Sequence record: NC_047880.1
Direction: 5' to 3' (one strand)
Length of the DNA: 64,000 nt
In this document: positions 5,918 to 61,093 of the stretch, piece after piece
Numbering within the stretch: position 1 is the stretch's first letter
How the letters are laid out: each line of letters opens with the position of its first letter
Program-made: the position numbers and the translations under genes
The notes under the pieces: generated by a model
What the model was told of the DNA's origin: nothing
Databases searched by the model: none
What the model saw: only the letters and a program-made list of their open reading frames with translations

Positions 5918-5925
5918 AAAATTAG
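5918..5925 (-). promoter_or_regulatory. Class-A (late) promoter-like motif CTAATTTT
   Basis: Intergenic, 33 nt before the fibre operon. Confidence 0.65.
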
Positions 5926-5932
5926 TGATATA

Positions 5933-6628
5933 TCAAACAGGGTCGCCCGACTTAGGACTCGTCGAACCGTATTTAATGCGGAACACGTAGTCGAGACTAT
6001 CGAACGGGAAATCGTTTCGATACACTACATAATCAAATCCACCGAGAGATACTTCTGCTGCACCTTCAAAGTTGAAGTCGTTAAACTCCATAGCCCCGTC
6101 CCACGAACCAGAGAAGCCTTGAGCTGTCTCTTGAAAGTAGCCATAAAGCAAACGCTTAGGCCAAGCGACATAGAAGAAGCGATTGTTATCAGAAGTAGAT
6201 TCATTAGGAGGGCAGGTAATAAGCTGAGGACTCTCTTCACCTAGAATAGTAGGGAGCGCACGGAAGAATGCGTCATTGTAATCGATCAACGACATTACTT
6301 TATCGAGAACACCGAAACGAGGTCCGTACTCGCCGCTAAATGGAACAGACACGCGCACACGATTGGACGTAGCATTCAGCGTTGTACTTACGTTATATGC
6401 TTTGGCTACGATATCATGCTCGCCTGTATCGAACGGTACAGTGAAGTCGAAGTCAGCAACGGTACCTGTAGTAGGCATAGCAACTGTCTTCAATACTTTC
6501 CCGCTGCTGTTCTCAATCTGGAGTGTACCACGAAGAGGCGGTGAATCCAGATGAACGACGAAGCGAAGATTCTTGTTTCGCTGCGAGAAGCAATACTCCA
6601 AGTTACCTTGAATGGCAAGAGTAAACAT
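5933..6628 (-). CDS. Structural protein with an Ig-like N-half and a C-module paralogous to the 1335-aa fibre
   Basis: C-terminal FYVAWPK...GSWDGA.EF.DFNF.G.AEV...DYV.YRNDFPFDSL is nearly identical to the C-terminus of 600..4607. Confidence 0.75.
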   Translation of the reverse strand: MFTLAIQGNLEYCFSQRNKNLRFVVHLDSPPLRGTLQIENSSGKVLKTVAMPTTGTVADFDFTVPFDTGEHDIVAKAYNVSTTLNATSNRVRVSVPFSGEYGPRFGVLDKVMSLIDYNDAFFRALPTILGEESPQLITCPPNESTSDNNRFFYVAWPKRLLYGYFQETAQGFSGSWDGAMEFNDFNFEGAAEVSLGGFDYVVYRNDFPFDSLDYVFRIKYGSTSPKSGDPV

Positions 6629-6644
6629 AAAGCCTCACAATACG

Positions 6645-6670
6645 AAAAAGGAGGACCGAAGCCCTCCTTG
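6645..6670 (-). terminator. Intrinsic terminator after the sheath gene
   Basis: GGAGGGC-TTCG-GTCCTCC followed by TTTTT. Confidence 0.8.
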
Positions 6671-6677
6671 CTGTGGA

Positions 6678-8357
6678 TTACAGAGACAATGACGTGGAGG
6701 TACTGCCTGACGGATTGATGTTGAAGCGATAGATCAAACGCTTCGCAGCGCGTGTCGGGTCGAGCACGATATCAAGAATCAGGTCGCCATTGGCAATTGA
6801 CTGATTAGTGTTGTTCGTGCTATCGCAGACAACGACATAGCCCTGACTACCAGAGTTACCGCCACGCAGACCGCGAGCGAGCTTGATAGTTTCGAGGAAG
6901 CGTTCAACCATACCTTTCAGATAGTCACGCAGAATCTGGTCGTTCGGATCAAACAGACCGACACGACAAGTTCTCTGACAGATTTCGAGCACGTAGCCTA
7001 CCATGCGCTGAATCTGAATCTGCTGGAATGCAGAGTTCTGATTGTACAGAGTATTCGATTCCCACACAGCGTAACCGCCACCAGAGATATCAGGCAGTTT
7101 ACGAATGTAGTTCACTTGCTCGCGTGTCATTGCATCACGGTCATCTTGATCGTATTTCTGAGTAAGACCTACGAAGTCGAGAACCTGAGAAGCAGTGATA
7201 CCAGCCGGTGCGAACCAGCTACCGCGATTGTTATCAGTGAATGCGAACACAGCACAAATCTGACCAACGTTCGGCACAGTGAAGTAACGCCCAGTATCTT
7301 CATCGAAGATCTTAACATCAGGAGTATACAGCGCCATGTTTTTGTTGTTCAGGTTCAGTGTCTGACGACGATAGCGAATCGCTTTGGCAACGGACTGCTG
7401 GTCAGAGGGAACGGCTGCGACAACGAAACAGTTGATGTGGTTGTTTGCAGCAAGCGCCATACCGCGATGAACGATATAGTCTTCAATGCCACCAGACACA
7501 AGCAACGTCACACGGATTTCTTCTGGGTCAGAGTAGTACGTCTGATATGCAGCAGCGAGCTGGTCAGAAGTAACACGCGCACCATCAGAACCACCCTGGA
7601 AGAAGATGAAGTCTGAGGTGAAGAAATCAATGTCAGTCGTGAAGTACGGGTTCTGGATGAAGCGGAAGTTTGAGCTTTCGTTTTCCATCACAGTACCGAT
7701 GCGATACTGACGGTCGAACTCATCCTTGTAGTCAGTTAAGCTACACTGATAAGTATTCACTGGAGCACTACCAGCCTGATAGTTTTCGTACTCGTCGATG
7801 TAGAACAGTTTAGTGTTATACTTCGTACGGTCGTCAAACGCGCTCAGACCTTTAGGCACAGCAGGACGAATCTGCATAGCCATGAAGTTGTTCCAGTCAC
7901 CTGGGTTTTCGAGAATAACGTAGCCGATGACGTTATCATTCAGAGGGTCAGTTGGCAAGAAGCCAAGACGATCTGGTGAATCGACACCTACAACATTACC
8001 GTCTTCGTCAGTATACGGAGTCAGACGAATAACAGGCTGCAATGCAGTCGGATCATCAACAGTGAGAACGCCGACAGCGTACAGCGCACCATTAGTGATA
8101 CGAACATAGTTCAGTTGGTTGGTTTGTTTTGCAATCGGCTCTGCGATATACAGGCCCAAACCGTACTTTGGATCTTTAAGACCGAAGATGTTTTTCAGGT
8201 CGTCTTTACCACGTACAGGGACACGTTGGTTAACAGGACCGCGTCGACCCTGCCCCACCATGCCCACAACAGACGTAGATAAAGACGTTGCACCCACGGA
8301 CAAGTCTCGAACGCCAGTGTAAACACCAGCGGAGGAATGTGTCGAGTTTACGGGCAT
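6678..8357 (-). CDS. Contractile tail sheath protein
   Basis: N-terminal AGVYTGVRDLS (PGVY-like) and VGMVGQGRRGPVN; C-terminal FDPND...L..IK..RG..GY.VVCD.TNNT...I..G.L..DI...PT pattern typical of sheaths. Confidence 0.92.
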   Translation of the reverse strand: MPVNSTHSSAGVYTGVRDLSVGATSLSTSVVGMVGQGRRGPVNQRVPVRGKDDLKNIFGLKDPKYGLGLYIAEPIAKQTNQLNYVRITNGALYAVGVLTVDDPTALQPVIRLTPYTDEDGNVVGVDSPDRLGFLPTDPLNDNVIGYVILENPGDWNNFMAMQIRPAVPKGLSAFDDRTKYNTKLFYIDEYENYQAGSAPVNTYQCSLTDYKDEFDRQYRIGTVMENESSNFRFIQNPYFTTDIDFFTSDFIFFQGGSDGARVTSDQLAAAYQTYYSDPEEIRVTLLVSGGIEDYIVHRGMALAANNHINCFVVAAVPSDQQSVAKAIRYRRQTLNLNNKNMALYTPDVKIFDEDTGRYFTVPNVGQICAVFAFTDNNRGSWFAPAGITASQVLDFVGLTQKYDQDDRDAMTREQVNYIRKLPDISGGGYAVWESNTLYNQNSAFQQIQIQRMVGYVLEICQRTCRVGLFDPNDQILRDYLKGMVERFLETIKLARGLRGGNSGSQGYVVVCDSTNNTNQSIANGDLILDIVLDPTRAAKRLIYRFNINPSGSTSTSLSL

Positions 8358-8383
8358 AACATGTCTCCTTATATTGACTGTCT

Positions 8384-8394
8384 GAAATTATCGT
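8384..8394 (-). promoter_or_regulatory. Class-A variant ACGATAATTTC
   Basis: Upstream of the tail sheath gene. Confidence 0.5.
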
Positions 8395-8412
8395 AAGCGC
8401 ACACCAAAACGT

Positions 8413-8440
8413 AAAAAGGGCACCCGCAGGCACCCTTTAG
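8413..8440 (-). terminator. Intrinsic terminator after the DHH gene
   Basis: AAAGGGTGCC-TGCG-GGTGCCCTTTTT. Confidence 0.8.
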
Positions 8441-8444
8441 TTTG

Positions 8445-9494
8445 TTAGCAGTCGCAGCCCACAGAATCAAAGGCAAGATTCAGGTCTGGATAAAGTCGTT
8501 TAAACTCTTCTGCATCCATATTGAACCCAGCAGCATTGATGTGACCTTCACCGCCTTGAGATTGAGCTATGTGTTTTGCACTGCCCGCAACGTTTTCTGT
8601 GTAGCCAGACGAACGTACTGAAACAAACACACGACTTGGGTCACGATGACCAAGACGCGGCAGCAACACTGTTTGGAAGTGCGCATAGTTTTCATATACG
8701 TGAGTACCGAGTTCAGAAGCAATGCCTTTGTCACACGGCACTACTGCATGTTTAACCGGCACCAAATCGTTCGGCTCTGCGAATACGCTGTTGGTATCAA
8801 TGAGATGTTTAATCTTTTCATCACGCTCAACGATGTTTTTAAAACCATCAGCAATGATTGTTTCGATGTTACCATCAACAATGATATCAAAGGCTTTCTT
8901 AACAGTAGGTGGCATCTCGTCAAAGATAACACCTGACTTCTCAACTTCGCTGAACACGTCCTTAGAATATCCTTCATAGAAGGCGAAGGCGCGTTTGTTA
9001 GATCGTCGCCAGCAATCGCGGTCAGACACTAACTGAGCGATACGGATAATGTTGTTTACGAACACATATCCGCTGTTGAGAAACTGAGTAACATGATCGA
9101 GGTATGCAAGTAACGCACCTGAACCCGCAGCAGTAAAGACAAGCGGCAATGGAGTTACATCACCAAGCTTTGCACATTCTGCTTTATACAGTTCATGGGT
9201 GCGAACATTGTGGTGGTCGAGAACTTTGAAGTTCCCTTTATAGTGCTGAGTGAACACCGCCATCTGCCGCTCTGTGAAAGAGAAGTCAACAACGATTACA
9301 CGCTCATAGTCGAAGATGCCAGTCAATTCGTCCAGCTTTATACCATCAGCGTTTACGATATCGCCGTTGTCTTTTGAGTAGACAGCAGGCAGATAGTGTT
9401 TCGCGTCTGTAGGGAAAGCAAGTGCGATAATGGCAGCAGCAAACGATCCATCAGCACAACCTTGATGATAGACAACAAGTGTAGTCATGACCAC
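8445..9494 (-). CDS. DHH/DHHA1-family phosphoesterase
   Basis: Motifs YHQGCADG, VVDFS, VLDHH, SGALL, VSDRDCW, GGEGHINAAGF. Confidence 0.85.
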   Translation of the reverse strand: MVMTTLVVYHQGCADGSFAAAIIALAFPTDAKHYLPAVYSKDNGDIVNADGIKLDELTGIFDYERVIVVDFSFTERQMAVFTQHYKGNFKVLDHHNVRTHELYKAECAKLGDVTPLPLVFTAAGSGALLAYLDHVTQFLNSGYVFVNNIIRIAQLVSDRDCWRRSNKRAFAFYEGYSKDVFSEVEKSGVIFDEMPPTVKKAFDIIVDGNIETIIADGFKNIVERDEKIKHLIDTNSVFAEPNDLVPVKHAVVPCDKGIASELGTHVYENYAHFQTVLLPRLGHRDPSRVFVSVRSSGYTENVAGSAKHIAQSQGGEGHINAAGFNMDAEEFKRLYPDLNLAFDSVGCDC

Positions 9495-10351
9495 GTCCAG
9501 TTATTCGGGCTTGTTGATGGGTTTAGCATCAGCTTTAAGCCTTCGAGGGTTTGTTCCAGAGATTTGCGGTACTGTTCATCAGCAACGCTCTCTCCGTATC
9601 GTAACGCAAGACAGAATAACTGCCATTCGGATGTACCGCGTAGTTCTTCGATTTGAAGTCTAAGCTGTTCACGTCGTTGGCGAGCCATCATCAAGCGCTC
9701 TATTAAATTAACTACACTGTGCGCTTTGGCAAAAACTTTTATGTGAATTTCTTCAAGAAGATCGTAGTTCAAATCATCCATAGCTTTTCGGGCTTCGATG
9801 AACAAACGGTTACGTTCTGCACGCACATCTTTAGGGAGGTGACGGCACTTGTCTGGATGTGTACCACGAGCGATAGCACGATACACATTACCACAACGTC
9901 TATTCAAATCCATTGCAGCTAGAATACCGTCAACAACTTCGCTATCCGCATCACCTTCGTTGTCTTGAGTCTCATGCTCAGTATCAGGCAGAAGTGCGTC
10001 CATAGCTTTCTTGCGTTCTTCTGCTTCAAGCTGGTCTTCAAGATCATCTGACTTGGCCTGCTCTTCCTGTTTCGCTATCAGGTCTGCATGAAGGCGCTCG
10101 ATAGAAGCAATCAGAGGTGCGTTCGATACGTTCAGCTTTTTAATCAGAGTTTCACAGCGCTCTGTATCAGAAGCAAGGCGCATCTCCAGAGAAGCAACCT
10201 GACGTTGTACCTCTTCGAAGTTATCTTGAGCAGACTCCGCATCGTCTGCGCTATACTCAATTTCTTCGACGTTATCCTGTGCAGCAACTTCCGTGTTGTC
10301 GTGCTTCACTAGCGACTGGCCAGTAACAACCATTAGCTCTGTGTTGGGCAT
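9485..10351 (-). CDS. Coiled-coil protein with a J-domain-like (HPD) segment
   Basis: YRAIARGTHPDKC...RNRLFIEARKAM matches J-domain helix II-HPD-helix III. Confidence 0.65.
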   Translation of the reverse strand: MPNTELMVVTGQSLVKHDNTEVAAQDNVEEIEYSADDAESAQDNFEEVQRQVASLEMRLASDTERCETLIKKLNVSNAPLIASIERLHADLIAKQEEQAKSDDLEDQLEAEERKKAMDALLPDTEHETQDNEGDADSEVVDGILAAMDLNRRCGNVYRAIARGTHPDKCRHLPKDVRAERNRLFIEARKAMDDLNYDLLEEIHIKVFAKAHSVVNLIERLMMARQRREQLRLQIEELRGTSEWQLFCLALRYGESVADEQYRKSLEQTLEGLKLMLNPSTSPNNWTWS

Positions 10352-10542
10352 GGGCGCGTAAGCTCCGAGATAGGTTTAGCGAGCAACTCAAGGAGTCGTG
10401 GCGGACAGGTTGGGTTGCGTTTCAAGTTCTTATGCAACCATTGCAGATTAGAACCAGATGCAGTTACCTCAGAGCGAAAGCTGGGTAACTTCAAGTCCTT
10501 ACTCTGTTTGGCCAGCAACGCATTGAGTTCGTTCAGTAGCAT
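10333..10542 (-). CDS. Hypothetical protein
   Basis: ORF in operon context; RBS AAGGA. Confidence 0.65.
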   Translation of the reverse strand: MLLNELNALLAKQSKDLKLPSFRSEVTASGSNLQWLHKNLKRNPTCPPRLLELLAKPISELTRPCPTQS

Positions 10543-10552
10543 GATTGTTCCT

Positions 10553-11179
10553 TTATAAAGTCATGAGGTCGAGGATGTTTGATACAACGTGTGTTGGTCC
10601 AATCGAGATACCCGCTTGAACAGGCAGATGCACACGCTTAGTAAATAGTTCCATCGGGTCAAGGCCACCGCCTGTGACAACGATGCGAGGAATCTTCGGG
10701 AACATCTCAAGAATATCACGCAGTCTTTCGACCTTGTACGATGTACTCTCAAGGGTTACATTGGATATTACTAATAACGACGGTCGCTTGCTTTTGAGTT
10801 GTTCATAGTCGAAGCGATCTCCGTACAGCGTAACCCAGCGAGGTTTGAGTGCAGTCGTCGCACTGTCTTCTACAGCCGAGTTAAAGATATTCAGTGCAGC
10901 CATCTTAGCGCGGGCATCAGATGGGAAACTGCTTATCACAGTGATTCGTGGATCAGAACCGAACGGGTTTGTGATCATTTGAGCTAGGTGTCGAAGCTGT
11001 TTGGTCTTCGAAAACACTTTACCCTTGAAGTACGGAGAGAGCGGCTTGAAATCTTGAGCGGCTTCTTCAATCACGTACTCGTCTTTCTTTCCATACAGCA
11101 GTTGAGGGTCTACACCCAACGTCTGCATTTGCTTGGCCACATCTGGTTCAAAGTTGAAAGTTAACACTATACCCTCCAT
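10553..11179 (-). CDS. Degenerate DnaC/IstB-like AAA+ protein (probably inactive)
   Basis: ITVISSFPSDARAKMAA at the Walker A position, LLVISNV at Walker B, PRIVVTG at sensor 1; first gene after a CTGTAAATA motif. Confidence 0.5.
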   Translation of the reverse strand: MEGIVLTFNFEPDVAKQMQTLGVDPQLLYGKKDEYVIEEAAQDFKPLSPYFKGKVFSKTKQLRHLAQMITNPFGSDPRITVISSFPSDARAKMAALNIFNSAVEDSATTALKPRWVTLYGDRFDYEQLKSKRPSLLVISNVTLESTSYKVERLRDILEMFPKIPRIVVTGGGLDPMELFTKRVHLPVQAGISIGPTHVVSNILDLMTL

Positions 11180-11193
11180 ATGTTTCTATCAGC

Positions 11194-11202
11194 TATTTAC
11201 AG
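11194..11202 (-). promoter_or_regulatory. Class-B promoter-like motif CTGTAAATA
   Basis: Intergenic before 10553..11179. Confidence 0.7.
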
Positions 11203-11218
11203 TTTTAGCAGCAGAAGG

Positions 11219-11248
11219 TAAAAGAGCCGGACCGAAGCCCAGCTCTTA
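11219..11248 (-). terminator. Intrinsic terminator
   Basis: AAGAGCTGGGC-TTCG-GTCCGGCTCTTTT. Confidence 0.75.
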
Positions 11249-11254
11249 GTGTCA

Positions 11255-11626
11255 TTACATCAGAGCCAGTTCAGGGTCAATGTACGTGTATTTGAACACG
11301 ACAATAAATCCTGATGGTACTGAACTTGTAGGCATGATCTGATAACCGTAAAGCATGAACTTGCCTTTGGTATCAGGTTCGAGCAGCGGGTTGAATTCGA
11401 GATAAGAAGGTTCGAGCTTCAACTTCTCTGCGATATCAAGGGCCCAGCCATCGAAATCATAATCGGTATCAGGTACTTCCCACGAGATGGAGTACTTGTT
11501 CCAATGTTCTGCCTGCATGTCTGTATCTTTTGAGATCCAGATAAGATTATCGTATCCCAGATGATAGCAGATAGCGTTAGCCAGACCACGTTCGTTCATG
11601 TGGCGCTGTAATTGATCTAAACGCAT
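11255..11626 (-). CDS. Hypothetical protein
   Basis: RBS AAGGAG before MRLDQL; followed by a terminator. Confidence 0.7.
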   Translation of the reverse strand: MRLDQLQRHMNERGLANAICYHLGYDNLIWISKDTDMQAEHWNKYSISWEVPDTDYDFDGWALDIAEKLKLEPSYLEFNPLLEPDTKGKFMLYGYQIMPTSSVPSGFIVVFKYTYIDPELALM

Positions 11627-11631
11627 TCGAG

Positions 11632-11922
11632 TTACTCCTTTGTGCGTTGTGGTGCAGCTACCATAATGACTCTGGTAGAAGAACCCTCTGCATGATTTGT
11701 AACTGAGCACAGGTCAATGCGCTTGCTGCCTAATGTTTTGGACAGCAGCGTTGCAACGATAGCAGACGCAGACATAGGGTGCGTGAAGTTAGACACAACA
11801 CCCTCGACAGTCTGTACATCTACCAGTTCCGATTGCTCTGCAAACTCAATCACAATTCCTGCGCGTGTTGCCTCTGCCTTGATATCATCCATGGTAAGGC
11901 TTTGGGGTAAACGCTCTTTCAT
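11632..11922 (-). CDS. Hypothetical protein
   Basis: RBS GGAG before MKERL; tight packing. Confidence 0.65.
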   Translation of the reverse strand: MKERLPQSLTMDDIKAEATRAGIVIEFAEQSELVDVQTVEGVVSNFTHPMSASAIVATLLSKTLGSKRIDLCSVTNHAEGSSTRVIMVAAPQRTKE

Positions 11923-11961
11923 GTTTAACTCCATATAGACTGCAAAGAGACAGACTATAAA

Positions 11962-12387
11962 TTAGTTGCTGAGTCCCTTTAACAGCGCATTCACGCTTTC
12001 GATAAAGATCGTTTGCTTTTCAGGAGGCAGCGTACGGAAGTTTGCCAGAGCATCGTCAACAAACGTCTCAGGCACAGGCTGAGGTTCTACAGCTTCAACA
12101 GGTGCAGTAACGCGAAGCTTGAACGTGCCGTTAAACACATGGCCGTACGCCAGACGGTTACGAACAGAGTTCAGGTCAGAGATAGACTCGATAACGAAAC
12201 CGTTAGGGAACGCAGCGAAGATTTCTGACAGATCGATAACGGCTTTATTGTCCGGCGCAGGGGCCTTCGCTTCGAAGTGAACAGTGTATTCAATACCGTA
12301 CGAATCATCTTTCTGTTGGTGGCTGAAAGTAACTTTTTCAGTTGCAGATAATGTTTCGTAGAGAAATGTTATCAACGAATCTGACAT
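11962..12387 (-). CDS. Hypothetical protein
   Basis: ORF with RBS GAGG, operon context. Confidence 0.7.
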   Translation of the reverse strand: MSDSLITFLYETLSATEKVTFSHQQKDDSYGIEYTVHFEAKAPAPDNKAVIDLSEIFAAFPNGFVIESISDLNSVRNRLAYGHVFNGTFKLRVTAPVEAVEPQPVPETFVDDALANFRTLPPEKQTIFIESVNALLKGLSN

Positions 12388-12394
12388 ATAGACC

Positions 12395-12910
12395 TCAATT
12401 GGATTTTAGATTGTCGCACAGCATCCGAGTGAATTGTTCGAAGTTGATGCGCTTGAGTTCTGACAGCTCGGACCACGCAGGGAGCTTAGGGTCATGAGCC
12501 ATGAAACTTAGATACAGAGTAGGTGCGGACGTGCGTTCTGCTATCGGCTTTTTCACACGGGCGCACGTAGAGATAACACATCCACGAAGAATGAAGCCCT
12601 GATTAGGAAGGTCTTTGATACGGGGCTCGACGTGATCAATTGAATGAAGCATCAGATACTCACCGAACTCCTGACGCAACTCACTCATATTCAGGATGCG
12701 ATGCACGATATCCGAGACACATACACGTCCCGCACACGAACCCATATCGGTTGTAGCGATAGGAATATCCACTTTACGAGGGCTGCTGACAGACAGGTAG
12801 TTTTCATTTGACGAATTAATAAAGAAGACTGTCAGGTAATTAACATCAGCCAAATTCGGCAGGAGATATCTGTCGAGCACCTCTTGGACGTCAATAGGTT
12901 GGGCTCTCAT
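12395..12910 (-). CDS. Hypothetical protein
   Basis: TAATG stop/start overlap with the upstream gene. Confidence 0.7.
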   Translation of the reverse strand: MRAQPIDVQEVLDRYLLPNLADVNYLTVFFINSSNENYLSVSSPRKVDIPIATTDMGSCAGRVCVSDIVHRILNMSELRQEFGEYLMLHSIDHVEPRIKDLPNQGFILRGCVISTCARVKKPIAERTSAPTLYLSFMAHDPKLPAWSELSELKRINFEQFTRMLCDNLKSN

Positions 12911-13197
12911 TAGAGTAGCCCTTGGTCGAAGCACTGAATCACAGTGAAGTTGATTTCCATATCACTGTGATTAACAGGGCTGCCCGGATAGAAAGTGACT
13001 GCACCTGTAGTCTCAACGTCTGTGATTACGCACACGTCTTTCAGCAGCATGAAACCTAAGTCCAAATCGAACTTAGTTTCAGGCAGTGCTGCGTCAAACA
13101 CATGACAATTAACAGCAGCACTGTGATGATCCATCAGAATCTTATGCAGACTCTGACTGAAAGGAATCTTGTGTTGTGTCTGAATAGTTCGCATCAA
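12910..13197 (-). CDS. Hypothetical protein
   Basis: RBS GAGGAG; overlaps the helicase stop. Confidence 0.65.
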   Translation of the reverse strand: MMRTIQTQHKIPFSQSLHKILMDHHSAAVNCHVFDAALPETKFDLDLGFMLLKDVCVITDVETTGAVTFYPGSPVNHSDMEINFTVIQCFDQGLL

Positions 13198-31554: not shown

Positions 31555-31562
31555 AAAATTAG
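31555..31562 (-). promoter_or_regulatory. Class-A motif CTAATTTT
   Basis: Intergenic before 30719..31531. Confidence 0.65.
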
Positions 31563-31577
31563 TATTTCGAGGAAGAG

Positions 31578-35166: not shown

Positions 35167-35174
35167 AAAATTAG
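35167..35174 (-). promoter_or_regulatory. Class-A motif CTAATTTT
   Basis: Intergenic before 33846..35135. Confidence 0.65.
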
Positions 35175-35261
35175 CGTTAAGGTAGTGAAATTACCAACAT
35201 GATCACTTTACATTTATTAAAAGCAGTGTAGGCGATTAATAAAAAATTCGTGTAGAAAAAC

Positions 35262-36067: not shown

Positions 36068-36075
36068 AAAATTAG
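36068..36075 (-). promoter_or_regulatory. Class-A motif CTAATTTT
   Basis: Intergenic before the H1-like gene. Confidence 0.65.
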
Positions 36076-36118
36076 TATAATCTCCGCGATTTACCTGCAG
36101 GATTATTCCGAAATATTT

Positions 36119-38298: not shown

Positions 38299-38306
38299 AA
38301 AATTAG
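38299..38306 (-). promoter_or_regulatory. Class-A motif CTAATTTT
   Basis: Intergenic before 37268..38263. Confidence 0.65.
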
Positions 38307-38309
38307 CAT

Positions 38310-44421: not shown

Positions 44422-44429
44422 AAAATTAG
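44422..44429 (-). promoter_or_regulatory. Class-A motif CTAATTTT
   Basis: Intergenic before the endolysin operon. Confidence 0.65.
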
Positions 44430-44437
44430 CGTCAGAA

Positions 44438-50835: not shown

Positions 50836-50843
50836 GAAATTAG
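50836..50843 (-). promoter_or_regulatory. Class-A variant CTAATTTC
   Basis: Intergenic before 50269..50802. Confidence 0.6.
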
Positions 50844-50867
50844 CGTCTGATCAGACTTTTCTGAAAT

Positions 50868-52239: not shown

Positions 52240-52257
52240 TATTCGGCAGTGTACAGA

Positions 52258-52298: not shown

Positions 52299-52349
52299 GA
52301 TCGAGACATAAAAGGGTGATAACAACTATCGGCAGTGGGCGCTGGCGAT

Positions 52350-52547: not shown

Positions 52548-52588
52548 GTATTCTCCTGCTATAAAAAATTCTCGTCGTTATTGAATTA

Positions 52589-52597
52589 TATTTACAG
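52589..52597 (-). promoter_or_regulatory. Class-B motif CTGTAAATA
   Basis: Before 52350..52547. Confidence 0.7.
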
Positions 52598-52599
52598 TT

Positions 52600-52980
52600 A
52601 AATCCAGTTCAAATCCTGAACTAAAGTAAGACTAATCTTAAACTCCAATATGCTCTCGTAAAAACATATTGGAGTTAGCCCTCGACAGATGACGGTCTAT
52701 CGAAGACTATCCCCCTGCACTCTTGTATGTACGTCAGTGCAGGAACGTTCGCGGTCTTATGCGCTATATCTCGCAGCAGGGTTGGCAGCAGGTAGCAGGG
52801 TCCCTCGCTGCATAGCGCGGCCGCACTTCAGCCATCAGTGTTACGCGGTGTTACACTGAGCGGCCTTGACTCTTTGGCCGAGTCGGTACAAAAAAGTGTC
52901 TGGCCCACAATGAAGGCATGAAGCATTCGGGCCAGACCAAAACTTTCGAAGCAAACTCCTTATGCCTCGTTTTGTACATG
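52600..52980 (-). ncRNA. Candidate structured non-coding RNA of unknown family
   Basis: No ORF of 60 aa or more; at least 6 helices of 7-12 bp and two pseudoknot pairings; CTAATTTT motif immediately upstream (52983-52990). Confidence 0.65.
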
Positions 52981-52982
52981 TA

Positions 52983-52990
52983 AAAATTAG
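52983..52990 (-). promoter_or_regulatory. Class-A motif CTAATTTT driving the candidate ncRNA
   Basis: CTAATTTTTACATG, identical to the 36068 site. Confidence 0.65.
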
Positions 52991-53017
52991 AAACATCTCG
53001 CAATATTCAGACAATTC

Positions 53018-53605: not shown

Positions 53606-53937
53606 TAGTGTCTCGTGCCATTTACCAAAATAGGTATGTTGTTGATACGACCGAGAGATAAGAAATGCTTGTGGTGAAGCTGTCTCATTTCATCGGCATT
53701 CGTTACGAAGATGACTTCCTGATCGTAGTCCAGTTTGAAGCACGGTACTTCACGCAGTTCTACAGTATCACCAATCTCACAGACATGGTACGGGGCATTC
53801 AGCCAAACAGAACCGTTAGAACAATAAAGAATGTGACCCACGTAATAAACATCATCAAGTGAAATCATGTGGAGAGGTTCGAACATCAAGGCTTCGTTAT
53901 CGTTGAAGTCGAAAGTGAAATCATCATCGTCAGGCAT
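53605..53937 (-). CDS. Hypothetical protein
   Basis: TAATG overlap. Confidence 0.65.
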   Translation of the reverse strand: MPDDDDFTFDFNDNEALMFEPLHMISLDDVYYVGHILYCSNGSVWLNAPYHVCEIGDTVELREVPCFKLDYDQEVIFVTNADEMRQLHHKHFLSLGRINNIPILVNGTRH

Positions 53938-53940
53938 AGG

Positions 53941-54513
53941 TTAAGACCTCAAATCAATCAGGATAGAAGCACTGAGATCACGAAGCATACTGCGACCCAG
54001 TGATGTATACATAACCTGAGAAACAACAATGCGTTCGAGGAACAGACGCGAGCTTTCAACATCGTGCCCTGTCTTACCGCGAACATATTCGATTATAGAG
54101 GAAGGTGGCTGTATGAGGAAGGTAAGTATTTCTGCATCATGCAAAACAGAACCCATGTCAGTGACAGGGCGCATCTCTGTTTCCTGATCAAGGATGTACG
54201 CGAGCACACGCTCACCGTTACCTGTGATTGGATTCTGCTTGAAGAAAGAACGAGTAACGTCCACAGTGTGTTTAAAGTTGTAGTCGCTACTCGTTGGAAG
54301 ACGCAAGAAAAGTGAAGCAAGTAAAAGGTTAATATCGACCTGAGGGCCGCTTTCAATATTGAGCATCGCGTGAGAAGTGAGAACAACATTGAGAGCGAAG
54401 TCCCTAGTGTACAGTGTATGCGCAGCCGCGTGTCTGTCATAAAAGTCAAGGGCTTTCCGTAACCCTTGATTCATTAACAGATGTTCTGCTTTTATGCGGG
54501 CGAGGCGCTGCAC
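53941..54513 (-). CDS. Degenerate HD-domain-like helical protein
   Basis: LLLASLFLRL at the AALLHD position, LHDAEIL at the DAD.L position. Confidence 0.4.
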   Translation of the reverse strand: MQRLARIKAEHLLMNQGLRKALDFYDRHAAAHTLYTRDFALNVVLTSHAMLNIESGPQVDINLLLASLFLRLPTSSDYNFKHTVDVTRSFFKQNPITGNGERVLAYILDQETEMRPVTDMGSVLHDAEILTFLIQPPSSIIEYVRGKTGHDVESSRLFLERIVVSQVMYTSLGRSMLRDLSASILIDLRS

Positions 54514-54514
54514 T

Positions 54515-55486
54515 TTAGTTTTCCCCGCGGATTTCTTTAAGCGAGTTCTTCATCGCTTTGCGCAGAGACTTACCAACATCAATACCGTCGATGTGCTTCG
54601 CAAACACATGGGCGAACAATGTTGTTGGATTTTTCATTACTGCTTTGTCGAGATCAGGACGGCCACCAGCAATCTGAATCTCTCCAGGCCACAGGTCTGC
54701 AATAGCGGCAGAGTCCTGTCCTGCAATCAGTTCGAGTTCACGCACACTGATTGAGTTCTGACGTGCGATAGTACGGAAGATGATATCGACGAAAGGCAGA
54801 AGGTCTTCGGACACAACGTTCTTCACGTCTTTAGCATCACCAGCACGTTGGAAATCTTCCATCAGTTCTGTCAGAGTTTTCTGATCGATCTTCTGAACGT
54901 TGCGCAGTTTCTTGAACATCACCATCCAGCGAACTTTACGCTTAGAACTTACGAGGTGAGTCCAGACGCTTTCGCCTAATGCAAGGAGTAGACGATTATA
55001 AACATCCACACTAACGCAATCACGATCAACGAACACAGAGACTTCATCATGCCATTCATCCTTACGGAACTTACTTCGGAATGAATGCGTCTTCGAGCCT
55101 GACTGCTGAATGAAATTGATAGACGCCATACGTCTTACAGCTTCACGCAGTTTGTACTTGTCGATCAGCTTAGGAAGTTTCTTCACGCCGATCATACAGG
55201 CTTTACGAACTTCCGATTCACGTCCGTACAGATGCAACGCAGGCATATCAGAAATAGCAGGTAGGCCTACGTGCGGACGAACAGTAACACCAAACACAGA
55301 ACTGCCTGGCTCAGGGTCATCACCTAGAACACACAGCAAGTCAGTGCTTGGCAGGAATTTAATCACGACGGGTTCTGGCAGATGCAGCGAGTTAGCAGCA
55401 AGGCCAACTGTTTTACCTGTCGCTAGAACCAGAAGATTTTTATTACCCTGCCTTACGACAACATAATCTTTTTCACGATGTTTCAT
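54515..55486 (-). CDS. Hypothetical protein with a degenerate zincin-like segment
   Basis: LALGESVWTH at the HExGH position, LFAHVFAKH at the E.FAE.F position. Confidence 0.5.
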   Translation of the reverse strand: MKHREKDYVVVRQGNKNLLVLATGKTVGLAANSLHLPEPVVIKFLPSTDLLCVLGDDPEPGSSVFGVTVRPHVGLPAISDMPALHLYGRESEVRKACMIGVKKLPKLIDKYKLREAVRRMASINFIQQSGSKTHSFRSKFRKDEWHDEVSVFVDRDCVSVDVYNRLLLALGESVWTHLVSSKRKVRWMVMFKKLRNVQKIDQKTLTELMEDFQRAGDAKDVKNVVSEDLLPFVDIIFRTIARQNSISVRELELIAGQDSAAIADLWPGEIQIAGGRPDLDKAVMKNPTTLFAHVFAKHIDGIDVGKSLRKAMKNSLKEIRGEN

Positions 55487-55494
55487 AACGGCCT

Positions 55495-55971
55495 TTAGAT
55501 TTGAGTTTCAGAAGAAAGAAGTCCGTGAGTCATACCAGCAGCAGGATGCCACTTGGTAGTTACGTTGAGGAGAGCTTGCTCTTCCCACGCATCATTGTCT
55601 TCAAGTTGTTCGCAGATCAGAGCGAGCGCCATGTTCTCGTCTTTGCCTAAGTGCGCGAAGTCAGCAACAACGATCTTAGGCTTAGACAGGTCTGCGATCT
55701 CTTCGAGACAGTATTGCAGTTCTTGCAGCGAGTTAACGGCATACGAACTGCAATCCATCAGACCAGCATATTCAGTTGGTCCAAAGTGAGTGATCGCAAA
55801 GTCAGGCGCGATATCATGCAAGCACAGGAAGTGCATCAGGTCAGTGGCAATCGACGGCTGAACTTGCATGTTAAGTACCGCGATTGAGCACGGTACGTCT
55901 GATACGATTTGAAGATCACATGATGTTCCAGCAAGGTCTTTGACGATGCTGTGTGCGAGAAGGTTGCTCAT
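55495..55971 (-). CDS. Hypothetical protein
   Basis: RBS GAGG; operon context. Confidence 0.7.
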   Translation of the reverse strand: MSNLLAHSIVKDLAGTSCDLQIVSDVPCSIAVLNMQVQPSIATDLMHFLCLHDIAPDFAITHFGPTEYAGLMDCSSYAVNSLQELQYCLEEIADLSKPKIVVADFAHLGKDENMALALICEQLEDNDAWEEQALLNVTTKWHPAAGMTHGLLSSETQI

Positions 55972-55982
55972 GGTGAAGCCCT

Positions 55983-56207
55983 CTATTTCTCTTCTGTTGG
56001 GTAGGATACAGGACTAGAAGTCTTGTAGAAGTTAAAGTCCGTGTTGAAACGAACAGAGGCGCGAGACACTTCTGTTTGTGCCCGCACCGACTTCTGCTGT
56101 TTGCGTTTGTTGAGAGACTCACGACGATCGAGGTCGTCAAAGATACCAGACCGTCTGTGGTACTTGAACTTCGGATGCACTGAAATATCTTTGACGATAG
56201 CGGTCAT
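55983..56207 (-). CDS. Small basic hypothetical protein
   Basis: Start moved to MTAIVK (RBS AGAGG) to remove overlap. Confidence 0.6.
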   Translation of the reverse strand: MTAIVKDISVHPKFKYHRRSGIFDDLDRRESLNKRKQQKSVRAQTEVSRASVRFNTDFNFYKTSSPVSYPTEEK

Positions 56208-56211
56208 ACGT

Positions 56212-56709
56212 TTACCTCTTAGCTTTTTCAACCCGTTTACAATACTCGTTCCATTTTTTAATACAGAACTCATAAAAAGTTAAAGTATCAACTCGACCTG
56301 CGTAACGTTTATGCCATGAGCCTACATGATGACGACAACAGCTTTTTCCGTATAAACAACAGATCAAATGACCAAGTCCCCACATGATAGGAAAATTAGT
56401 CTTACGAATAATACGAGCAAGCTCCTGCGCAACATTGTCCCAATCAAAATCTTTGAACAACGTATCCAATTGTTTTTCGATCTGACCAATCTTTTTGTGG
56501 TCGAATTGATCTAGTATTGGATCCAATTTCTTGTCAGACCATCCGTATATCCAGTGCGAAGATGGTTTGTGCCCTTTATACGCAGTAGGCGTTTGATACT
56601 TAATAGCATCAATAACCAGAGCCTCTTCAAAAATTGTTAGGATTTGTCGCTTGGTCGTATATAAAGGTTCGTCTCTTTTTATAGGCCTCTTTCTCTGTAC
56701 TCTTGCCAT
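56212..56709 (-). CDS. Hypothetical protein (AT-rich gene)
   Basis: RBS AAGGAG; variant promoter CTGTAAACT upstream. Confidence 0.7.
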   Translation of the reverse strand: MARVQRKRPIKRDEPLYTTKRQILTIFEEALVIDAIKYQTPTAYKGHKPSSHWIYGWSDKKLDPILDQFDHKKIGQIEKQLDTLFKDFDWDNVAQELARIIRKTNFPIMWGLGHLICCLYGKSCCRHHVGSWHKRYAGRVDTLTFYEFCIKKWNEYCKRVEKAKR

Positions 56710-56754
56710 ACACAGAAACTCCTTGTGAAGAATGTATGCAGTCAGTTTACAGAA

Positions 56755-57279
56755 TCAATCTTCTACGCCGCGAATGCGCTCAAGCTCATACGCAAGATAG
56801 TCTTCCCACGAATAGAAACCATCTTTAGCAATAACTGGATCGTGCTGCCCACCAATCTTCGTACCTTTAGGGAAACGAATTTTGTTAGACAGTCTCTGCA
56901 ACTTATCGTACATGTAGGTTGTATGTCGAACGAGCAAGTTAGGTGCAGGCAAATGCTTCTGCAAAAACTTGCAACTTACCATTAAAGGGAAGTCTTTCAA
57001 CAATTCAACTGAGTCGCGTTGTTTCTCCGCGCGCACGATCACCTGATCAACTTTAGCCTTATACTCAACATTCGAGTAGTACCATTCATCAAGCGAATCA
57101 AGACCGTGCTGTTCTTCATATACCATGGCTTCATACATGGACATAAGAACAGGCTTCCCCTCCTTCTTGTCCTTGTACGCCAGTAACATGTCGGCATAAG
57201 AGCCGAACTTTACTTCCATGAATACTTCAAGGATTGAGGCGTAACGAAGAACTTCAAATTCAGTAAGTACCTTACCCAT
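56755..57279 (-). CDS. Hypothetical protein
   Basis: RBS GGAG; operon context. Confidence 0.7.
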   Translation of the reverse strand: MGKVLTEFEVLRYASILEVFMEVKFGSYADMLLAYKDKKEGKPVLMSMYEAMVYEEQHGLDSLDEWYYSNVEYKAKVDQVIVRAEKQRDSVELLKDFPLMVSCKFLQKHLPAPNLLVRHTTYMYDKLQRLSNKIRFPKGTKIGGQHDPVIAKDGFYSWEDYLAYELERIRGVED

Positions 57280-57282
57280 ACT

Positions 57283-58899
57283 TTACTCCGGGAATATTTC
57301 TTTTTCAGAAAATCTTTTAGCAACGAACAGAGCATCACTGCTGTTCACCACATCACCATCAACAAGCATCAGAGCACCGTCATGCTCAAGCGAGTAGAAG
57401 CCTTTAACGTTCGGACAATTTAAAATTGCATCGAACAAAAACTTACTCTCCCAACCAGCTAACATATGGTTGAGAACACGGCGACTGATTTTCTTACGCT
57501 TCTCGTCAGGCTCAGGGTCGTAGCGCGATCCTGTAGCACAAGTGAGAACCCCGTATTCTTGCCTGTTTGCTTTCGCGTTCTTCCTGAACTTCTGTTGGTA
57601 CACATCGAGTAATTCATTGATGCCGTAGTACAGAAGTGTAACGCGCGTATTCCAGTCAACAATTTTATTGCGGACCTCTCGCTTCGGAAGTATCTTAGCA
57701 TATTCCTTATATGCGTTACTGTAGGGACCAGTCTCTAACTGACCTGCAGAAAATATCGTTGAGTACAATAGGACCTTGGCTATGGGCTTATCGATCTGAA
57801 AAACCCGAGCAACGTCTTCGACAGATTGAAACTCGTTGAAGAATCCTAAATCAATACCGTTGAACTCAAACTCTTTGCGGAGCACATTGAACTGACTGGA
57901 CTTCATATCCCAGTTGGTTCCGACTGTGTAGCACTTCTGTTTGAGACTGCTTGGTAAGTTTTGGAATCCACCACCCTCTTCGAACAAACGACCACCGAGT
58001 TTCGATAGACGGTACTTAGCCCAATAGCGAATTACGAGAGGACTCTCGCTAACAATTTGCACAGGCCCGCCAACGATAGTGTCGAGTAGAGTTTTAACCT
58101 GTAGGTATTGCTTCTTCGCCTTACGATTAGCGATCAAAGATCTATCTTCCAAATAAGCAAGTATAGGTTCGATGTTCACTTCGTTCGGCAATTGTTTTTC
58201 TAACACAGCACGATAAAGCGCACGGCCAGTTAAAGTTTTACCGTTACCCCTGTCGCGATTCCTGTCAAGAGTTGACAGATCGTGAGAAGGTTTAGTGAAA
58301 GGGCGCTTAGAATTCTTTTGAATCTGGGACCAGACTGTTATGCCGTAGTCTTCACGGGGAATCTTTAGCGGGCTATAGAATCGGATGCGATGCAAGATAT
58401 CGTCGGATGTGTGTGGTTTAAAGTGCCCGTACATTCCGTCTAAGATTTCTTGACGCATTCTGAACTCTCTGCACCTCCCCTTTGCTTTATCGTAAGGCTT
58501 AGTCTCAAGGACGTTTACTTTTAGCCAATCTAAGGAACGTTCGAAAGTCCCTCTCTTCGATACAGCATATTTACCGACTGCAACAGAATCTCCGCCCCTG
58601 CGATAGCCAAATACCATCGGAAGCTTGTCTTGACCCAATTCTTTCGGAAATGGCACCCAAACACGTCCAAATTTCTTTTTCTTGTCTTTTCGCGCAGGAT
58701 ATAGGCTACACTGCAAAATATGCCAGAAGAATAAGTTCAATTGAGTACGGAACTCGTGTTCACCGCTAGGCGGACCCTCATAGGGGCAAGCGAAAATCAC
58801 GTTGTCTCGAACCCAAATAACGACTTCTTTCTCCTGGTAAACGGGGCTTGTGATCAGAACAGGCCCCTGGCCAGAAACGATTCGTTTTTTCATGTTCAC
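57283..58899 (-). CDS. Divergent family-A/TV-Pol-like polymerase-domain protein
   Basis: GGRLF...FQNLPSSLK, WDMKSSQFNVL (motif A), AKVLLYSTIF (motif B), LAGWES, SLEHDGALM (motif C). Confidence 0.65.
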   Translation of the reverse strand: MNMKKRIVSGQGPVLITSPVYQEKEVVIWVRDNVIFACPYEGPPSGEHEFRTQLNLFFWHILQCSLYPARKDKKKKFGRVWVPFPKELGQDKLPMVFGYRRGGDSVAVGKYAVSKRGTFERSLDWLKVNVLETKPYDKAKGRCREFRMRQEILDGMYGHFKPHTSDDILHRIRFYSPLKIPREDYGITVWSQIQKNSKRPFTKPSHDLSTLDRNRDRGNGKTLTGRALYRAVLEKQLPNEVNIEPILAYLEDRSLIANRKAKKQYLQVKTLLDTIVGGPVQIVSESPLVIRYWAKYRLSKLGGRLFEEGGGFQNLPSSLKQKCYTVGTNWDMKSSQFNVLRKEFEFNGIDLGFFNEFQSVEDVARVFQIDKPIAKVLLYSTIFSAGQLETGPYSNAYKEYAKILPKREVRNKIVDWNTRVTLLYYGINELLDVYQQKFRKNAKANRQEYGVLTCATGSRYDPEPDEKRKKISRRVLNHMLAGWESKFLFDAILNCPNVKGFYSLEHDGALMLVDGDVVNSSDALFVAKRFSEKEIFPE

Positions 58900-58919
58900 A
58901 TCGTGTTTACCTGATTTTC

Positions 58920-59280
58920 TATCAGCTATTTACAGATATAGAACCCAAAGCTATTCAAGGCTATACAAGATAGATCATCATAGGAAGGATAGCTACAGCG
59001 GTACAGCTATACAGCTCATAGATAGCTACGATTGTTATTGCTGGTACACATCTTTAGGCGGCACGTTTTTCAAAGAGCGAAAATGAGAAAACGATACCAA
59101 TACCTGCCCAAAGCATACCAACTAACAGCCCAGCAGAGCATTCTAGCCGACAAACCTAGGTCGTCTAAACCGTGTAAATAATTTCTAAAAAGGGAGCAGT
59201 TTTCTGAAAAAACACCGCAATTTAGAGAAAAATGAGGGCAAAACCGAATAAAATCAAAGGTTTAACCCTCGTTCGACAGA
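58920..59280. other. Long intergenic region with short GCTA/TAGC repeats and an A-rich tract (candidate origin)
   Basis: No convincing gene; 6-7 [AG]GCTA units in 58923-59030; orphan plus-strand TGTAAATA at 59173. Confidence 0.35.
58927..58935 (-). promoter_or_regulatory. Class-B motif CTGTAAATA
   Basis: Before the TV-Pol-like gene. Confidence 0.7.
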
Positions 59281-59287
59281 AATCAGA

Positions 59288-59944
59288 TCACTTTTTCTGA
59301 GAAACGCGCTGTCCTAATTTGACGCCGATGCTCGTCATAATACGTTTCACTGTTTCGCCGTCATGTTCTTCAATTGCTTGCGCAAGCCGTTCGCCCTGAT
59401 CACGCGATAGCTCAGGCATAACCATTTTAAGCATAGTAGAACGCAGTTTGGCGCTCTTGCTGCGCTTTTTCGACAGCGAAGTCGTTTCCATCTCCTGTGC
59501 TACTCGGCTCATTGTACGCTGGACGCGACGATCAGCGAAGATATCACCAAAGATATCGCCGAATAAGTCTTTGAACGACATACCTCCGCCCATTACATCG
59601 TCCTTTGTGAAACGAACAGGCTGTCCGAGCGCATTAGTTTTAGCGCAATGTGTAGATTCGACAGCGTTTTGAATGCGATCGCCCGTGCGCGTTACTTCGT
59701 CAGGACGTGACGGCTTGCCCTCTGCTCCAGGATTCGTATCACCGTTACGCAGCGCAGGGTCACCTTCAACTTGTTTGTTTTGATCAAACATGTCATCGGC
59801 TGTAGCGCTTTGATTCGGGTCAAACGGAATCTTGCCTGTAAGCTTGTTAGGGTCAGGATACGAACGAGGGATATCAGACGCCGGTTGAGGCATGTTCGTC
59901 ATATCGCCGTTCTTTTCGCTATTCAAACTAATCATTACTCGCAT
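59288..59944 (-). CDS. Putative head-associated protein with an MRVMISLNS tag
   Basis: Start moved to ATG 59944 (RBS AAGGA); N-terminus fits the tag family. Confidence 0.65.
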   Translation of the reverse strand: MRVMISLNSEKNGDMTNMPQPASDIPRSYPDPNKLTGKIPFDPNQSATADDMFDQNKQVEGDPALRNGDTNPGAEGKPSRPDEVTRTGDRIQNAVESTHCAKTNALGQPVRFTKDDVMGGGMSFKDLFGDIFGDIFADRRVQRTMSRVAQEMETTSLSKKRSKSAKLRSTMLKMVMPELSRDQGERLAQAIEEHDGETVKRIMTSIGVKLGQRVSQKK

Positions 59945-59954
59945 TTTTCGTTCC

Positions 59955-61064
59955 TTATCGAATTTTATAGCCTTTGAAAATGTTGTACGCAACTTCTTTG
60001 CGCTGTACAGGACGAGTGACGCACACCCATTCCCATTGATCGTTCTTCGCCGTACGCTTCTTAGGTGCTTCCATAACTTTCAGCACGTAGTTTTTGAAGG
60101 GCAGCACTAAGAAGTCTTCAGGTTCAATAGCGCCGCTACGCGCAGGCAGAACAACCGTGATGTTACCGACGGTCAGCTCCTGTTCGTAGTTCAACACGTT
60201 TGCTTCGTCGCTGATGTTGCCGTTAACAGGCGGTACACCCAAGTCGAAGATCATCGCAACGTGCGTGAAAGACTCAACATTACGGATTCGTAGTGTTACG
60301 TGCTGCCCGCGAAAACGGTCCATGTTTGCGGCTGTCAATTCGACCTCTACGCCGTTCAGGAGCAGCATAGGGCGGGGAAAAGCGGGCAATAATCTTTCGT
60401 TCTCACGAATAGAATAAGTCGCCTGCGTAAAGTATTTTGGAATAAGCTGATCGAAATCTGCGTGTGCGTCTTTGCGTTGCTGTCTAAACGTGGACGGACT
60501 TGTTGATTGATCCAACGTATAGCCAGACAGCTCTTTGACGTGATGGTGCGTGACGATGTTATAGATATAGCCTGTTGCTGCGAAGCCGGGAACAATACCC
60601 TGACGGAAACAAATGCCGCAGTTCGCAACGTTACCTGCATCACCTCTGACGTCAAACTCTTCGTCAGTGCCTGTACCCATAATGTCTGCTGCATCCATTG
60701 CTGCATCCATGCCGTCGTCAATATCATCGAACGCAACAGTCTGGCGACCGCCACCAAACATTGTCTTTGATACAGTACCGAGTTTAACTCCACCAGCTAC
60801 TTCGTTGGAGCTACGACCAAGACCCTTCAATGGACCTTCTTGATCATCGAATTCATCGTTCTCAACCTTGTTACAACTACAGGTGATACCCATCTTCGCT
60901 TTCTTGAAGATGACTACCTGCGTTGAATCGACAGCAAGCGCCTGTTCAACTTTGGACTGCACCACTTCTTGGATGCTGTCTAAACGTTGTTGCACTCGTT
61001 CTGTTTCGTAGGTCTTATGACGGTTGTAACGGTTGGTGGGTTTACCACGTTCAATCCAGCTCAT
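59955..61064 (-). CDS. Putative neck/head-completion protein
   Basis: K....CSC...CGICFRQG pattern as in myovirus neck proteins; late CTAATTTT motif; RBS GAGGAG. Confidence 0.5.
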   Translation of the reverse strand: MSWIERGKPTNRYNRHKTYETERVQQRLDSIQEVVQSKVEQALAVDSTQVVIFKKAKMGITCSCNKVENDEFDDQEGPLKGLGRSSNEVAGGVKLGTVSKTMFGGGRQTVAFDDIDDGMDAAMDAADIMGTGTDEEFDVRGDAGNVANCGICFRQGIVPGFAATGYIYNIVTHHHVKELSGYTLDQSTSPSTFRQQRKDAHADFDQLIPKYFTQATYSIRENERLLPAFPRPMLLLNGVEVELTAANMDRFRGQHVTLRIRNVESFTHVAMIFDLGVPPVNGNISDEANVLNYEQELTVGNITVVLPARSGAIEPEDFLVLPFKNYVLKVMEAPKKRTAKNDQWEWVCVTRPVQRKEVAYNIFKGYKIR

Positions 61065-61085
61065 AATTGTCTCCTCTTTGTGCTT

Positions 61086-61093
61086 AAAATTAG
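61086..61093 (-). promoter_or_regulatory. Class-A motif CTAATTTT
   Basis: Before the neck-like gene. Confidence 0.65.

Follow-up and report, generated by a model that had tools for sequence, protein, structure and literature searches.

The 64,000-nucleotide stretch of DNA analyzed here (the window) corresponds to bases 124001–188000 of Erwinia phage vB_EamM_Y3 (KY984068 / NC_047880), a jumbo phage of 261,365 bp from the genus Sasquatchvirus, and carries repeated intergenic copies of a short motif, ACG-CTAATTT, which is a genuine signal maintained by selection. We consider it probable that this motif is the sole recognition element of phage-specific late promoters, which would be read by the host core RNA polymerase in combination with a phage sigma-like factor. 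The genes of Y3 run rightwards between 1 and 44.6 kb, leftwards up to 185.1 kb, and rightwards in the remainder of the genome, so that transcription follows the minus strand across nearly the whole window. No regulatory features are annotated anywhere in the Y3 record. Gene functions were taken from the RefSeq annotation supplemented by PHROG scans, and the comparative analysis included whole genomes of the related phages Alexandra, Yoloswag, Dickeya phage JA29, Lu11 and PaBG. Positions refer to the window unless marked as genome positions.

The octamer CTAATTTT is present in the window in 9 exact copies (1.82 expected), a number reached in none of 100 dinucleotide shuffles, and all 9 are on the minus strand, which is the gene strand. 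The heptamer CTAATTT occurs 24 times in the entire Y3 genome (18 intergenic sense, 4 genic sense and 2 genic antisense copies). Intergenic DNA makes up 9% of this genome, and the location of 18 of the 22 sense copies within it is a clear excess (binomial p = 1.6e-15); outside terminators and ribosome-binding sites, no other 7-mer of Y3 is as strongly enriched in intergenic DNA (the ranking itself counted 17 of 22 oriented copies as intergenic). For the hexamer TAATTT the corresponding counts are 30 intergenic sense, 2 intergenic antisense, 18 genic sense and 4 genic antisense copies. An earlier note on this DNA had listed ten copies, and the sequences that it gave are indeed present at all ten positions on the minus (coding) strand, including exact CTAATTTT at 5918, 31555, 35167, 36068, 38299, 44422, 52983 and 61086 and the variants ATAATTTC at 8384 and CTAATTTC at 50836. 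The list is correct in all its entries but omits an exact copy at 56392 (in gp217) and a CTAATTTA copy at 11959, the latter overlooked because its eighth base is A. Likewise, the motif as originally defined captures a real signal but is too narrow. The conserved unit, A-C-G-C-TAATTT, does not extend to the trailing eighth base (T); the base preceding TAATTT is mostly C, but G, A or T takes its place at conserved sites, which defines the hexamer TAATTT as the core. ACGCTAATTTT is found in the window exactly at three sites and with one mismatch at two. The spacing of ~20–70 nt proposed in the same note agrees with the 22–70 nt that separate the listed copies from the next annotated start codon, except for the copy at 52983, which is followed by a structured stretch without genes.

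Conservation of the motif was assessed by locating the ortholog of each downstream gene in a related phage and comparing the 110 nt upstream of it with Y3. The motif is retained at 12 of 14 orthologous upstream sites in Alexandra, 10 of 13 in Yoloswag and 8 of 12 in JA29, whereas other 7-mers from the same regions are kept in 22%, 5% and 6% of cases, respectively (Fisher p = 8e-7, 1e-10 and 2e-7). The conserved footprint is ~10 nt wide and extends only 3 nt upstream of the motif. The intergenic sense-strand bias of CTAATTT recurs in Alexandra, Yoloswag and JA29, and (C/G)TAATTT is found upstream of large genes in Lu11 and PaBG, those for the tail sheath included. Chance or base composition as the cause was rejected given a small difference in AT content (GC of 44.5% in intergenic DNA vs. 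47.2%), shuffles that never reach the observed count, and conservation at orthologous sites 10-fold above the background.

The hexamer is also strongly avoided inside genes, as established against a null model in which synonymous codons were shuffled within each gene. Antisense TAATTT (AAATTA in the coding sense) is observed in Y3 genes 4 times vs. ~61 expected, a ~15-fold depletion that ranks 8 of 3951 hexamers, and sense copies number 18 vs. 34 expected. The antisense ratios are 0.07 in Alexandra, 0.04 in Yoloswag, 0.14 in JA29, 0.25 in PaBG and 0.36 in Lu11. Depletion on the untranscribed strand points to selection acting on DNA rather than RNA, and would be explained by a promoter core that fires antisense transcripts. 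Avoidance of a restriction site was considered as the reason for the AAATTA depletion and discarded: asymmetric restriction-type words are depleted in both orientations (0.16 for CTGAAG and 0.07 for CTTCAG; 0.07 for GACATC and 0.10 for GATGTC), in contrast to TAATTT with 0.06 antisense and 0.52 sense. As a separate observation from the same shuffles, the coding sequences of Y3 strongly avoid CAGCTG, CTGCAG, ACGCGT and TACGTA along with CTGAAG/CTTCAG and GACATC/GATGTC; ATGCAT is absent from them (47 copies expected); and CTCATC/GATGAG as well as CCWGG- and GATC-containing words are strongly avoided.

The arrangement of the sites suggests that the motif very probably behaves as a "-10 only" promoter element. 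The distance from the motif to the start codon has a median of 31 nt and a minimum of 22 nt, with a Shine-Dalgarno sequence included in this gap, which places the motif at about -10 rather than in a -30/-35 box. Many copies are located a few bases past strong terminators. The alignment of 54 TAATTT-class sites from four genomes showed no information content upstream of -16, and neither a hexamer spaced by 16–18 nt (a -35 box) nor an extended -10 TG at -15/-14 was found, the consensus at the latter positions being C-15 and G-14 within A-C-G-C. The base located 7 nt after the last T of TAATTT is a purine at 76% of these 54 sites, which share descent. A second motif of the phage, AATCTGTAAATA, is found upstream of replication genes and of the phage sigma gene gp241, and of the 101 sites in this class, 83% have a purine exactly 7 nt downstream of TAAATA. 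Once both classes are anchored on the purine, A-C-G-C-TAATTT aligns with T-C-T-G-TAAATA, with C-15, T-12, A-11, A-10 and T-8 in common. TAATTT itself contains T-12, A-11 and T-7, the hexamer being invariant through the way the sites were selected.

The earlier note described the motif as restricted to structural and late genes. This holds for 8 of the ~19 motif-led units in Y3, those with annotated virion or lysis genes; it does not hold for one nucleotide-metabolism unit, and the other units have no assigned function. The motif-led set includes both full-length annotated tail sheath genes (gp135 and gp158), a block of PAAR and baseplate genes (gp115–gp112), a tail-fibre block (gp111–gp108), the units running from gp156 to gp154 (tail) and from gp184 to gp182 (head-tail connector), the endolysin gene gp197, and a unit with the virion structural protein gp98. 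The genes behind the second motif are of a different kind. In its AAT-CTGTAAATA form it has 31 intergenic sense copies in the Y3 genome, including those in the window at 11196, 20407, 29819, 37228, 38846, 52233, 52591, 56746 and 58929 (minus strand) and at 62105 (plus strand). It precedes the genes for ligase, both DNA polymerases, a recombination nuclease, clamp loader, primase, SSB, a methyltransferase, dCMP deaminase and ParB, as well as an HNH-helicase unit and the sigma gene gp241, and no annotated virion gene of Y3 is found behind it. The resulting split between virion or lysis and metabolism or replication (8:1 for TAATTT vs. 0:13 for CTGTAAATA) is significant (Fisher p = 2.8e-5), and the TAATTT and CTGTAAAT(A) sites do not overlap, save for an adjacent pair at genome position 14309. 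TAATTT thus very probably marks a late class, a reasonable reading that gene function bears out in no more than about half of the units. A copy of CTGTAAATA at genome position 85343 falls within a region of more than 1.2 kb without any annotated gene (genome 84102–85368), whose transcribed strand lacks any long reading frame.

A phage sigma factor or RNA polymerase, implied according to the earlier note by the unusual motif, was sought among Y3 proteins. The first part of this expectation is borne out, as a sigma factor is encoded by gp241 (genome 196750–197787, outside the window; 345 aa), but RNA polymerase subunits were not found. The gp241 protein gives a weak Sigma70_r2 match and a profile match to sigma70 region 2 with the WW motif aligned, and is annotated as a sigma factor by PHROG (E 6e-167). 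In its AlphaFold model (pLDDT 81), residues 4–235 superpose on residues 111–446 of sigma70 (Z 15.6, rmsd 3.2 Å over 222 residues), a part that comprises region 1.2, the non-conserved region and regions 2.1–2.4. Models of sigma regions 3 and 4 had no match anywhere in the Y3 genome, which fits promoters devoid of a -35 box. The gp241 family is large in jumbo-phage metagenomes, and a study of PaBG reported that this type of sigma is conserved across the phage group and suspected a second sigma in PaBG gene 112 (PMC7412058). The Y3 homolog of the latter, gp332 (genome 259838–260968, also outside the window), had no match in Pfam and PDB-sequence profile searches. In a language-model search for look-alikes, viral Sigma70_r2 clusters came first (score 0.95, 171 shared features), which we treat as a lead only. 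The gp241 gene stands behind a CTGTAAATA motif, and gp332 is located downstream of both a CTGTAAATA motif and a good host-type extended -10 promoter (genome 256888–256916). Searches of the Y3 genome for beta and beta-prime RNA polymerase domains were negative; no T7-type polymerase domain was found either, albeit this is a weak negative, since the control was silent in every control genome. With no RNA polymerase found in the phage, the reader would most likely be the host core enzyme with a phage sigma-like factor, and gp241 is our first candidate for the reader of the TAATTT motif.

In the mechanism that we favor, TAATTT would occupy positions -12 to -7 of a "-10 only" promoter, and transcription would start ~7 nt after its last T. 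The late units started in this way would be those for tail sheath, baseplate, tail fibre, head-tail connector and endolysin, along with a small structured RNA and numerous genes of unassigned function. We infer promoter function, the positions of transcript starts, late action and the identity of the reading factor from sequence. A search of public sequencing runs for RNA data from this phage was negative. The location of gp241 behind the replication-gene motif CTGTAAATA further suggests a cascade leading from host sigma70 to middle genes and on to late genes. A more specific version, with three steps and two "-10 only" classes (CTG-TAAATA and CGC-TAATTT) read by gp332 and gp241, is possible but rather doubtful. 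In such a cascade, gp332, positioned downstream of a host-type promoter, would turn on the middle class, and gp241, with only regions 1.2–2 detected, would be made from a middle promoter and turn on the late class without a -35 contact. The layout of the gp241 and gp332 promoters fits the order host sigma70, gp332, gp241.

Several observations weigh against the late-promoter interpretation. The motif-led unit gp121–gp118 leads to genes for a nudix hydrolase, an MmcB-like protein and thymidylate kinase, and the majority of genes downstream of the motif have no known function. Several virion genes lack a directly upstream copy, among them gp139 (major capsid) and, next to it, gp140. One Y3 copy, at genome position 104118, was rejected as a site: it precedes the gene at 103691–104104, is probably the mere U-rich tail of a terminator hairpin, and has no counterpart in Alexandra, Yoloswag or JA29. 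The sites aligned from four genomes are related by descent, and the purine statistic is therefore not independent. Finally, with two phage motifs and gp241 perhaps joined by gp332 as a second sigma-like protein, several pairings of motif and factor are conceivable. With regard to the two virion genes above, a different sequence was observed in the two gaps that precede gp139 and gp140: they share the 11-mer TAATCGTCGCG, stop codon included, at genome 105313–105323 and 106074–106084 (minus strand), with similar sequence after it, and both gaps are devoid of either phage promoter motif.

An alternative reader is a sigma factor of the host, whose specificity might be redirected by a small phage protein in the manner of T4 middle transcription, with the phage sigmas serving CTGTAAATA or something else. 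TAATTT retains T-12, A-11 and T-7, which are the most important positions of the sigma70 -10 element, and both candidate sigma genes are located behind CTGTAAATA motifs, leaving the assignment of factors free. On the other hand, the sites have no -35 box or TGn that would compensate for the departure from consensus, and the hexamer is preceded by a conserved CGC. A scan with the sigma70 pattern gave hits no commoner than in shuffled sequence, and not one sense-strand hit coincided with a motif site, in agreement with the claim of the earlier note that the motif is not a sigma70 consensus. Moreover, antisense copies in Y3 genes are avoided far more strongly for TAATTT (0.06) than for TATAAT (0.29). 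Recognition by a host sigma is thus unlikely.

Still more improbable is a reading in which a DNA-binding activator or repressor of the phage occupies the motif, and polymerase does not contact it as a -10 element. In favor of such a regulator, the motif is a short, conserved box found at much the same distance upstream of genes. However, no second conserved promoter element is present either upstream or downstream of the box, and the 22 nt left before the start codon at some sites are too few for a separate -10 element plus a Shine-Dalgarno leader. In addition, the motif is asymmetric, which operators typically are not, and avoidance of antisense copies within genes is expected of spurious promoters, not of spurious operators.

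Action of the motif in RNA, e.g. a role in processing, stability or translation from within the 5'-leader, appears very improbable. Strand specificity and a short distance upstream of start codons would suit such a role. Nevertheless, the strongest selection is directed against the antisense copies in genes, many copies are positioned right after terminators, and start codons follow at variable distances; the copy at the head of a non-coding RNA argues specifically against a role in translation. The remaining candidate, an unrecognised single-subunit RNA polymerase encoded by gp219 (57283–58899, minus strand; 538 aa, no family assignment, divergent family-A polymerase-like), is the least credible of all: its model (pLDDT 81.5) matches the folds of Klenow, Taq and Pol theta (E ~5e-6), and T7-type RNA polymerases share the general fold of family-A DNA polymerases, but its top 50 structural matches consist entirely of DNA polymerases, without a single RNA polymerase (TM-scores ~0.3), the protein falls well short of the size of known single-subunit RNA polymerases, and the T-A...T pattern with a purine 7 nt downstream fits recognition of a sigma type.

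The individual sites in the window are all on the minus strand. The site at 5919..5928 (tcaCTAATTT) is located 33 nt before gp156, whose unit continues with gp155 and gp154 (a tail protein of 1335 aa); it is kept in Yoloswag, reads ATAATTT in Alexandra and has one mismatch in JA29. The acgATAATTT variant at 8385..8394, directly after a terminator hairpin, is 27 nt upstream of gp158, a tail sheath gene as assigned by the PHROG scan. ATAATTT is kept at this site in Alexandra, Yoloswag and JA29, and the homologous sheath genes are preceded by GTAATTT in Lu11 and CTAATTT in PaBG. The CTAATTTA copy at 11959..11968 (caaCTAATTT), found 36 nt before gp164, is kept in Alexandra. At 31556..31565 (ataCTAATTT, 30 nt before gp181) the motif is kept in Alexandra, Yoloswag and JA29 despite diverged flanks. 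The site at 35168..35177 (acgCTAATTT), kept in Alexandra and Yoloswag, is 38 nt before gp184 and heads the unit that leads via gp183 to the head-tail connector gene gp182; 20 nt upstream of it, ttgGTAATTT at 35188..35197 is a possible second, tandem copy. The copy at 36069..36078 (ataCTAATTT) is 70 nt before gp185, and homologs of this gene in Yoloswag and JA29 keep CTAATTT 85–100 nt upstream. For the copy at 38300..38309 (atgCTAATTT, 36 nt before gp187), the orthologous position is not mappable, the best protein matches of gp187 in the relatives being at another locus.

The site at 44423..44432 (acgCTAATTT), kept in Alexandra, Yoloswag and JA29, is located 12 nt beyond a strong terminator (stem 44465–44442) and 28 nt before gp197, the endolysin gene according to the PHROG scan. 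At 50837..50846 (acgCTAATTTc), 34 nt before gp208 and after a terminator-like hairpin, the motif is kept in Alexandra and Yoloswag. The earlier note had also placed one copy upstream of a candidate non-coding RNA, and this assignment was upheld: the site at 52984..52993 (tttCTAATTT) heads a gene-free stretch of ~380 nt that folds strongly (52600–52970, minus strand; minimum free energy of -150 kcal/mol, z = -7.1 vs. shuffles) and in which no conserved open reading frame was found. A search of the window for known Rfam families returned none, this stretch included, and Alexandra retains the motif as well as the RNA stretch (~72% of the 52600–52970 sequence conserved). The copy at 56393..56402 (agaCTAATTT), inside the coding sequence of gp217, is not alignable in the relatives and may be either a chance occurrence or an internal promoter. 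Finally, the site at 61087..61096 (acgCTAATTT) is located 22 nt before gp221 at the divergence of two gene blocks; it is kept in Alexandra and Yoloswag, with a GTAATTT variant in JA29, Lu11 and PaBG. At 61087–61102 the minus-strand ACGCTAATTTT overlaps a near-mirror plus-strand GCGTTAATTTT, 60 nt before the resolvase gene gp222, and this overlapping pair, which is not conserved in Alexandra, could be a set of back-to-back promoters.

The type of mechanism proposed for Y3 is familiar from other phages. Late promoters of T4 (TATAAATA) are read by the host core polymerase with gp55, gp33 and the sliding clamp gp45. They resemble the Y3 motif in having a single short AT-rich -10 element without a -35 box, upstream of virion and lysis genes, and the use of the host core with a phage sigma-like protein is what we propose for Y3. 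The TATAAATA sequence itself is one base away from the second class of Y3, TGTAAATA; it differs from CGC-TAATTT and occurs only twice in the Y3 genome, both times antisense within genes. The candidate factors also differ, gp241 of Y3 having 345 aa and spanning sigma70 regions 1.2 to 2.4, as compared to 185 aa for the T4 gp55 type. No gp55 or gp33 homologs were identified in Y3, no search aimed at them having been run; a clamp loader is annotated (gp209). In SPO1 (gp28, then gp33/gp34) and phiEco32 (gp36), a phage sigma redirects the host core to promoters of a later class, and a phage-encoded sigma-family protein would act likewise in Y3; both systems have their own consensus sequences, including a -35 element in SPO1, in contrast to the Y3 class, in which no -35 element is seen. 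Extended -10 promoters of sigma70 (TGnTATAAT) are similar in combining a -10 hexamer with a few upstream bases and in T-12, A-11 and T-7, but consist of TGn and TATAAT instead of A-C-G-C and TAATTT, and the sigma70 scan misses the Y3 sites.

Closest to Y3, the Lu11 record (NC_017972) annotates CTGTAAAT, the same word as the second motif of Y3, as a "putative middle/late promoter". It shares with the TAATTT class the "-10 only" architecture and the phage group, but differs from it at 5 of 10 positions and heads replication, recombination and sigma genes. No promoter feature is given in that record at (C/G)TAATTT sites, e.g. before the sheath gene gp061 and the ATPase gene gp067, and a clear CTGTAAAT class was not found in PaBG. 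Our literature search revealed no paper on a TAATTT promoter class, the Y3 genome paper (Buttimer 2018, Res Microbiol) being outside its coverage, and the paper on Dickeya jumbo phages does not mention promoters or sigma factors. The TAATTT motif itself thus appears to be unannotated.

The motif provides a map of transcription units for Y3, Alexandra, Yoloswag and the Dickeya JA phages, and a looser one for Lu11 and PaBG. In these poorly annotated jumbo phages, which infect plant-pathogenic and soil bacteria, ~80% of genes have no known function, and a position behind the late or the replication-gene motif gives an unassigned gene its first functional label. The system could also serve as a compact test case for how a sigma with only regions 1.2–2 detected would choose promoters without a -35 contact and for discrimination between two motifs that differ at five positions. 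The avoidance of an antisense hexamer is a simple and general signature that may be used to find phage promoter cores without transcript data.

Another set of conserved boxes was observed in the small-gene block at genome 206–253 kb. The sequence CTGCATATAA-TAGGCT(A/G)AAATAG is found there on the plus strand at genome positions 207024, 212443, 225183, 233896 and 237895, ~30 nt upstream of -10 elements of the TGnTAnAAT type. These sites are probably early promoters of the host type that carry an additional box upstream.

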